From Bugula neritina (lineage: Eukaryota > Animalia > Bryozoa): a DNA stretch of 64,000 nt. The notes beneath the pieces are model-generated. The model worked only from the letters and a program-made list of their open reading frames with translations. It had not been told where the DNA came from and did no database searches. Location: assembly GCA_964035545.1 (NCBI GenBank), contig OZ037768.1:9456741-9520740 (forward strand), read 5' to 3'. Of the stretch, positions 56,001-56,963 are shown one piece after another (positions within the stretch are counted from its first letter, which is position 1; each line of letters starts with the position of its first letter). The position numbers were made by a program, and so were the translations under genes.

Positions 56001-56601
56001 TAAAAAAGCTTATTAAAACTGAAGCGGCAAACTAAAAGATCAATCTATTTGTCACCCCAATAGAAATATAGTGTGCATTAATCAATTGCTGATAAACCAG
56101 ATTATTTGATTTACTACTGCAAATTTAAAATGTTTGTCATTGTTGTGAAGTTGTCTACTCATGTCTGACTTGTGATTTTCCACTCGGAGCTTATTTTCTT
56201 TCCATAATTATTCTTTAATGTCAATCAATCTTGTATTCACACAATGACAAACAAGCTAAGTTATGATTTAACCTGGGAAGAACTTCCTAATGGAAATAGT
56301 CTAGTGCTATTCGCTGGTAACATTTCATGCATGTGCTTCTATGTTGAACCAGCTTTATCCAATGCATTTGGCTACAGAATATAAATTGAATTTATATTTA
56401 TGATTGCTCATGATTTAGCTAGCCTATTTAATTAACCAGGAATCTACAATGGGAGAGACAATTTGTCTTAGTGGCTTTATGGGTATTGATGTACCCGTTG
56501 GACCTCTATGGATCCTGGGCGACATCTTCATTGGGCCCTACTACACAGAGTTTGACGCAGGAAATAATCGCGTTGGCTTCGCTGAAACTGCAAATAATTA
56601 G
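50065..56601 (+). CDS. CTSD: Cathepsin D-like aspartic protease, isoform with last exon A (392 aa); exons 50065-50126, 51001-51139, 51430-51553, 53260-53378, 53615-53825, 53970-54081, 54403-54553, 55264-55362, 56440-56601
   Basis: Signal peptide; propeptide RIPLKK; [40 protein letters not shown]; YGSGSLSG; FDGILGMGY; [13 protein letters not shown]; WILGDIFIG. Both catalytic DTG motifs are intact. Confidence 0.95.
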
Positions 56602-56801
56602 TGACGATCTGCTACTACTTATGATTCCACTTCTCTATTTTAATGATTATTATAAATCTTGCACTAGTTTTGTGTTCTATCCATATTGTTTTGTATATTC
56701 TTATTTTGTGAGCCTTTATTAACGTCTTTTATATTTATGTGACTGCTAAGTATGATGAATGTATTTCAAGTAGCAATTGCAATGTTTAAACATTAATTCA
56801 G

Positions 56802-56963
56802 GTGAGTCAAGCAGGTGAAACTATTTGTCTCAGTGGATTCATGGGTATTGAAGTACCATCCGGACCACTTTGGATCCTTGGTGATGTGTTCATTGGACCA
56901 TACTATACTGAGTTTGATGCACAGAATAACAGAGTTGGCTTTGCTCCTACTGTTGCTCCATAA
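56802..56963 (+). CDS. CTSD: Cathepsin D alternative duplicated last exon B
   Basis: CAG acceptor at 56799-56801, phase 0, 162 nt like exon A. Encodes [53 protein letters not shown]. Confidence 0.9.

Follow-up and report, generated by a model that had tools for sequence, protein, structure and literature searches.

In a 64,000-nt stretch of the Bugula neritina genome (the window, whose first letter is position 1), we identified one cathepsin D-like aspartic protease gene in which the terminal coding segment is present in two tandem copies, A and B, and in which RNA joints connect a single donor, at the end of exon 8, to the acceptor of either copy. The two acceptors are alternative 3' splice sites of one and the same terminal exon, and only the coding use of the two copies is exclusive. 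The explanation that best accounts for the locus as a whole, and that we hold with high confidence, is a single gene whose terminal coding segment underwent an ancient tandem duplication.

The features of the gene are collected in Table 1. Pfam searches were carried out on the exons individually, and six single exons scored above the gathering cut-off of the peptidase A1 family (PF00026). Each lobe carries one catalytic motif, FDTGSS in exon 3 and ADTGTS in exon 7, and by the domain profile and both motifs the product is predicted to be an A1 protease of the cathepsin D-like type. Segments A and B each cover profile positions 270-314/315, with E values of 2e-11 and 2e-12. The best matches of the last segment among solved structures were human cathepsin D chains (E 3e-20), followed by pepsin (1e-12) and renin (3e-11); judged on the last exon alone, the gene appears closer to cathepsin D than to pepsin or renin. 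The donor of exon 8 consists of the codon CAG followed by GT at 55363-55364, in phase 0, and the RNA joints agree with it.

Table 1. Features of the cathepsin D-like gene in the window. The boundaries of exons 1 to 6 are from sequence only.
Feature	Position	Strand	Basis or role
Exons 1-7, cathepsin D-like gene	50065-54553	+	Open-frame map, motifs and Pfam PF00026 matches
Exon 1	50065-50130, approximate	+	Start resembles a signal peptide
Exon 2	~50999-51139	+	
Exon 3	~51430-51555	+	DTGSS at 51490-51504
Exon 4	~53271-53390	+	
Exon 5	~53618-53830	+	
Exon 6	~53960-54085	+	
Exon 7	~54404-54553	+	DTGTS at 54464-54478; 3' end 54553 fixed by RNA joint to 55264
Exon 8, common donor exon	55264-55362	+	99 nt, phase 0 at both ends; RNA joints; Pfam positions 235-267
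Two TGATT(GC) motifs	56401-56415	+	39 and 29 nt upstream of acceptor A; six-lineage comparison
Segment A	56440-56601	+	Proximal acceptor, 53 codons and TAG; C-terminus of isoform A
Spacer	56602-56801	+	200 nt, AT-rich; 3' UTR in the A form, intron end in the B form
Segment B	56802-56963	+	Distal acceptor, 53 codons and TAA; C-terminus of isoform B
Shared short 3' UTR	56964-57011	+	Depth table and contig ends; 3' end approximate

In the whole 216-Mb assembly, the only match besides A and B was a distant paralog that is not duplicated. This paralog (L003, at G000:C78:15335-18490 on the minus strand) is the sole other aspartic protease match in the genome; it encodes the equivalents of exons 7-9 in a single uninterrupted open frame, and its last segment, present once, shares 46% identity with B. 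The public protein named CTSD of Bugula neritina (P0007, 89 residues) joins an open frame in intron 8 to B and skips A (56240-56963); it is a fragment model, and the deposited annotation lacks most of the gene as well as the A isoform.

Both segments are 162 nt long, and each begins directly after an AG, in phase 0, and ends in its own stop. They are identical at 42 of 53 residues (79%) and 112 of 162 bases (69%), with 21 of the 42 conserved codons differing synonymously only, 0 indels and 0 internal stops, and their flanks, at 24-36% identity, are unrelated. The initial annotation had described the pair in these terms, as two acceptor-led exons of 162 nt with their own stops behind a phase-0 donor at 55362, and all of this was reproduced, as were its hand count of conserved residues and synonymous codons and its remark that the flanks are unrelated. 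Its statement that no other exon of the gene is duplicated also agrees with our search of the gene's exons, which gave no second copy of any of them; a third copy of the last segment was not found within 48000-60000. The chance that an assembly error or a second haplotype produced the duplicate, which had already been judged unlikely, is practically negligible: the two copies are far from identical in DNA and stand in unrelated flanks, an independent, DNA-like run (X21) has A, the spacer and B in single contigs, and the pair recurs in independent assemblies of five other lineages. X21 covers this region continuously and free of joints, with introns and exons evenly covered, which establishes that the duplication is real in DNA and that the joints described below are features of RNA.

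For positions 54300-57400, we mapped the contigs of X21 together with those of X1, X2 and X11, three runs that are probably RNA and come from three studies. The spliced joints present in them indicate that X1, X2 and X11 contain RNA, with intron cover as well in X1, and intron depth in the three runs lies between 0 and 50. The joint between exons 7 and 8 (54553>55264, GT..AG) is found in all three. The joint from exon 8 to A (55362>56440, GT..AG) has depths of 377 in X1, 902 in X2 and 544 in X11, and that from exon 8 to B (55362>56802, GT..AG) has depths of 152, 262 and 620, respectively; the depths come from assembled contigs and are rough, and ratios of the A to the B isoform taken from them, about 2.5:1, 3.4:1 and 1.2:1, are not trustworthy. 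The two junctions that had been predicted from the letters are thus both present in contigs of all three RNA studies.

The same contigs show what follows segment A in the message. In X1 and X2 an unbroken contig of 394 nt (56436-56828; depths 270 and 912, respectively) spans A and the spacer and ends 27 bases into B, and in X11 this stretch is covered by two overlapping contigs with depths of 516 and 563; in each RNA run the A-spacer-B contig meets a B-carrying contig within B. The depth of the read-through contig equals that of the joint between exon 8 and A in X2 (912 vs 902) and in X11 (563 vs 544). No joint leaving the spacer was present in the RNA contigs, and a hexamer scan found neither AATAAA nor ATTAAA in the spacer of the window. 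The unbroken contig, the matching depths and the lack of a canonical hexamer together indicate that most or all A-form mRNAs run on into B and have the same 3' end; that the two forms share this end is suggested by the continuity of the contigs. The earlier view of A and B as mutually exclusive last exons does not fit an A-form contig that reads on into B.

True alternative last exons, in which A would have a cleavage and polyadenylation site of its own in the spacer and 3'-end processing would share in the choice, are nevertheless to be weighed, since the spacer of one related lineage (L005) does contain AATAAA and the A-spacer contig of X1 is shallower than the joint between exon 8 and A (270 < 377). 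We consider this quite unlikely, as the contig is unbroken from A to B in all three runs and matches the joint in depth in X2 and X11, the canonical hexamer is absent from the spacer of the window and from those of four of the five relatives described below, and no conserved element could be recognised in the spacer. A minority of A transcripts may end within the spacer. Under the preferred reading, with one 3' end for both forms, RNA cover in X2 and X11 stops between 56993 and ~57011, about 30-50 nt past the stop of B, and AATAAT stands at 56993-56998, just before the cover stops. In X1 the cover continues to 57390 at lower depth, perhaps from a longer UTR form or from background. The AATAAT-containing stretch also carries a polymorphism, a 3-nt deletion at 56992 (56992-57023), which is seen in X1, X21 and part of X11.

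Compared with strictly mutually exclusive exons, A and B agree in homology, length, frame and splice sites (162 vs 162 nt, 79% identity), but they are the last coding segments and not internal ones, and the A form holds both copies, not one copy per mRNA. Compared with alternative last exons, the upstream segment lacks a poly(A) site of its own, judging by the match of depths in two of the three runs and the missing hexamer. What the locus displays is one donor, two acceptors and a spacer that is kept, which is the pattern of a terminal alternative 3' splice site. Homologous 3'-terminal exons have been discussed before by Pillmann et al. 2011 (PMC3228551), who cite human CAPZB and assign such exons either to the class of multiple poly(A) sites or to that of differentially included stop-codon exons, known from Drosophila Mhc; both classes are kept apart there from strict mutually exclusive exons. 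CAPZB resembles the bryozoan gene in having tandem homologous coding segments of similar length, with their own stops, that give alternative C-termini to a folded protein and look exclusive in annotation; it belongs to a different protein family and is described with multiple poly(A) sites, whereas the bryozoan A has no 3' end of its own and B is carried as UTR. The stop-codon exon of Drosophila muscle Mhc, as that discussion presents it (PMC3228551), is alike in that an upstream segment with a stop turns downstream coding sequence into 3' UTR and that splicing decides between the forms. It differs in being a cassette exon with its own donor, whereas no donor of the bryozoan A is used and the spacer is retained, and in that the Mhc tails are not stated in that discussion to be duplicates, whereas A and B are 79% identical. 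With internal mutually exclusive exons the pair shares the tandem duplication, the conserved length, frame and acceptor, the purifying selection on each copy and the exchange of a single structural module while the rest of the protein stays the same; unlike them, the exchanged module is terminal and the A-form mRNA holds both copies, where internal exons are included exactly one per mRNA.

The donor at 55362 is joined either to the proximal acceptor at 56440 or to the distal acceptor at 56802. If the proximal acceptor is chosen, translation would proceed through A to the stop of A, and the spacer and the whole of B would be carried as 3' UTR; if the distal one is chosen, A and the spacer would leave with the intron and the ancestral-type C-terminus B would result. 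Both forms would end at the common 3' end, with a 3' UTR of ~400 nt in the A form vs ~45 nt in the B form, and the outcome would be two full-length proteases, identical except for their last 53 residues. The claim that one gene gives two proteases thus stands at the level of RNA, where both acceptors are spliced to one donor and two coding mRNAs are formed, and we infer that both proteins are made and that they differ in function.

It could instead be that only one form matters, with the other joint being noise or unproductive and the second copy a slowly decaying relic. The consistent residue differences between A and B are indeed minimal, and both proteins are known from RNA only. Such a relic is nonetheless very unlikely, as both joints are abundant in three independent studies, and acceptor, frame, length and stop have been kept in both copies across six lineages with dN of ~0.1. 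In the RNA runs, A and B both depart from the window by only ~1.5-2%, against ~7% in the introns. There is no exon junction downstream of the stop of A, and so the A form is no obvious target of decay.

The conservation of two usable copies was followed into related genomes. Relatives were found by a fragment-sized protein search with A and then with an alignment of A and B; their contigs are short, genomic and from one SRA series (SRR25569768-790). The layout of A, spacer and B is intact in five further lineages, presumably bryozoans, namely L004, L005, L006-L008 (near-identical to one another), L009 and L013. In these, an A-type segment stands upstream and a B-type segment downstream, each after AG, 159-162 nt long and with its own stop, and the spacers measure 200-420 nt. 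One contig (L006) includes exons 7 and 8 with introns, which indicates that the contigs are genomic. In four loci from other invertebrate assemblies, a single last exon was found within 4 kb on either side.

Synonymous divergence between the lineages is saturated, with dS undefined in most pairs and 0.96 as the lowest defined value. Over the six lineages, dN averages 0.122 in comparisons of A with A, 0.077 in those of B with B and 0.133 in those of A with B, and A changes about 1.6 times faster than B. Of the first 48 residue columns, 33 are the same in all six A copies, 31 of them with synonymous variation, and 39 are the same in all six B copies, 35 of them with synonymous variation. Invariant residues with synonymous variation, together with low dN, directly show purifying selection on each copy separately, with omega well below 1 among the A orthologues. 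The proposal of the initial annotation, an old duplication maintained by purifying selection on both copies, is therefore borne out by six lineages with saturated dS and dN of ~0.1 per copy class; the search of relatives with the last exon met both copies intact, with no decay, in all five further lineages.

To what extent the six pairs descend from one event was considered from the tree, the order of the copies and the residues. In the maximum likelihood tree, the six A copies lie on one side of a branch with support of 62/66, from 53 columns only, and the B copies do not form one clade. Sisterhood of A and B is rejected for the window (p-AU 0.013), whereas L006 (p 0.16) and L009 (p 0.20) are compatible with it. 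B begins with VSQAG, as does human cathepsin D, and a VSQ-G start is found in outgroups too; as B has kept this start, it is of the ancestral type and A is the derived copy.

These results leave some room for pairs that arose independently, or were gene-converted, in each lineage instead of descending from one ancient duplication: the A clade is weak and the B copies are scattered, sisterhood is allowed in two lineages, A and B of L005 are unusually close (dN 0.06), and a distant protease gene (L015) has a last-exon pair of its own, so the event can recur. We regard this origin as unlikely, however. The order of the copies is the same in six of six lineages, with the derived copy upstream and the VSQ-type copy downstream; Gln3 occurs in all B and in no A, and Ile29 in five of the six A; the motif TGATT stands upstream of A alone in all six; A and B within one species are saturated at synonymous sites; and sisterhood is, as stated, rejected for the window. 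Ile29 was also considered as a firm synapomorphy of A and was set aside, as GDIF is common in unrelated A1 proteases and A of L013 has Val.

The gene L015 (NCBI GCA_016618385.1, protein P0155, 25023-26838) is a distant member of the A1 family with its own tandem pair of last exons. Like the bryozoan pair, it involves the same exon, in two copies that follow AG acceptors and have their own stops; the copies are 1.2 kb apart and share the same hydrophobic tail. Unlike it, the gene is only ~48% identical to the bryozoan one in this segment, and its second copy has an extra Pro-rich stretch of ~110 residues before the shared tail. Its acceptors are near-identical (ctctttaacag), and since the acceptor regions are still alike, this duplication is the younger one. 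The deposited model P0155 reads both copies into one 642-residue protein and is probably wrong. Duplication of the last exon may thus recur in the A1 family. The other two-stretch matches from the exhaustive protein search, mostly fragments, were rejected as tandem gene fusions or bad models, P0155 excepted.

We then examined the non-coding sequence around the acceptors. TGATT, usually as TGATTGC and often twice, precedes the A acceptor by 10-48 nt in all six lineages and the B acceptor in none of them. A 5-mer of any kind shared by all six upstream regions arose in 1 of 1000 shuffles, although TGATT itself was found post hoc. The motif is probably a branch site or an A-specific splicing element, and it would fit a branch site of the yUGAU type. 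Comparison between lineages gave no conserved 7- or 8-mers in the spacer or after B beyond those seen in shuffles. Pairing of docking and selector RNA elements, as in Dscam, was also considered; inverted-repeat scans of intron 8 and the spacer in the window and in L006 returned short AT-rich pairs, none of which was shared, and this mechanism was rejected.

What the choice of segment might change in the enzyme was considered from an alignment to pepsin, in which segment residues 7-50 correspond to pepsin 280-325. The segment presumably forms the final strands of the C-lobe and the C-terminal tail, and we take it to supply Cys282 of the Cys249-Cys282 disulfide (pepsin numbering). Its residues at pepsin positions 287, 289, 291-297 and 300 are assumed to line S2 and the primed subsites, including part of the S2/S1' wall. 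The initial annotation had placed one distinction in the loop beside the cleft, DVPVGP vs EVPSGP; these differences are residues 17 and 20 of the segment, which vary within both A and B across the six lineages, so that the loop does not hold as a distinction between the classes.

Residue 3 alone distinguishes the two classes throughout the six lineages: B has Gln there in six of six, and A has Thr, Ala or Glu. This residue sits in a surface hairpin, shorter in pepsin than in cathepsin D, and A is most variable there. Residue 29, Ile in five of six A and Val in six of six B, corresponds to pepsin position 304 and adjoins the conserved Asp303. The last five residues tend to differ between A and B, and A ends in Asn in five of the six lineages. 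The C-terminal tail (FAETANN vs FAPTVAP), the other difference that had been pointed out, therefore survives as a tendency across lineages, but residue 3 alone is fully diagnostic. The consistent differences are very few, subtle and mostly at the surface, so that a functional difference between the isoforms is conjectural.

As the consistent differences lie at the surface hairpin and in the tail and not in the cleft loop, cleavage specificity is less likely to differ between the isoforms. An effect on surface recognition, sorting or stability, or a regulation of output through the differing 3' UTRs, appears more plausible than a change in specificity. In vertebrate cathepsin D this hairpin reportedly belongs to the beta-loop bound by the lysosomal-enzyme phosphotransferase, an observation that is ascribed to Baranski, Faust and Kornfeld in 1990. 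That the choice between A and B is a switch of sorting or partner recognition, and not of specificity, is a speculative and doubtful proposition at present; if true, a single gene could provide cathepsin D for the lysosome and also for secretion or digestion, tasks for which other animals use separate genes.

Exon duplication combined with alternative splicing is a known mechanism, and the bryozoan case adds no new one. A literature search for cathepsin D or aspartic proteases with exon duplication, with mutually exclusive splicing or in Bugula gave nothing relevant. RNA support and conservation in six lineages indicate that one protease gene can encode two ends of the C-lobe, both of them long retained. 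As a natural pair on an otherwise constant enzyme, A and B lend themselves to studying the contribution of the last 53 residues to cathepsin D, and for splicing biology it represents a clear case of a duplicated terminal module that is picked by acceptor competition, with the unused copy in the 3' UTR. Public annotation misses this two-tail arrangement, the 89-residue Bugula neritina model being the one that skips A.

Some variation between the window and the public runs was also noted; the RNA runs in which the locus occurs comprise a 'symbiont metagenome' and runs of one coded organism, among others. A second contig of X11 (depth 225) gave an odd joint, 55364>56442, which is most simply explained by an allele with T for A at 56441. 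A T at this position would change codon 1 of A from Glu (GAA) to Val (GTA), and Val is the residue found there in most of the related lineages. Over introns 7 and 8 (54560-56380), the divergence of the coded organism's public RNA and DNA runs from the window amounts to ~7% plus many small indels, against 1.5-2% in the exons, which suggests that they derive from a different haplotype or from a sibling lineage of the Bugula neritina complex.
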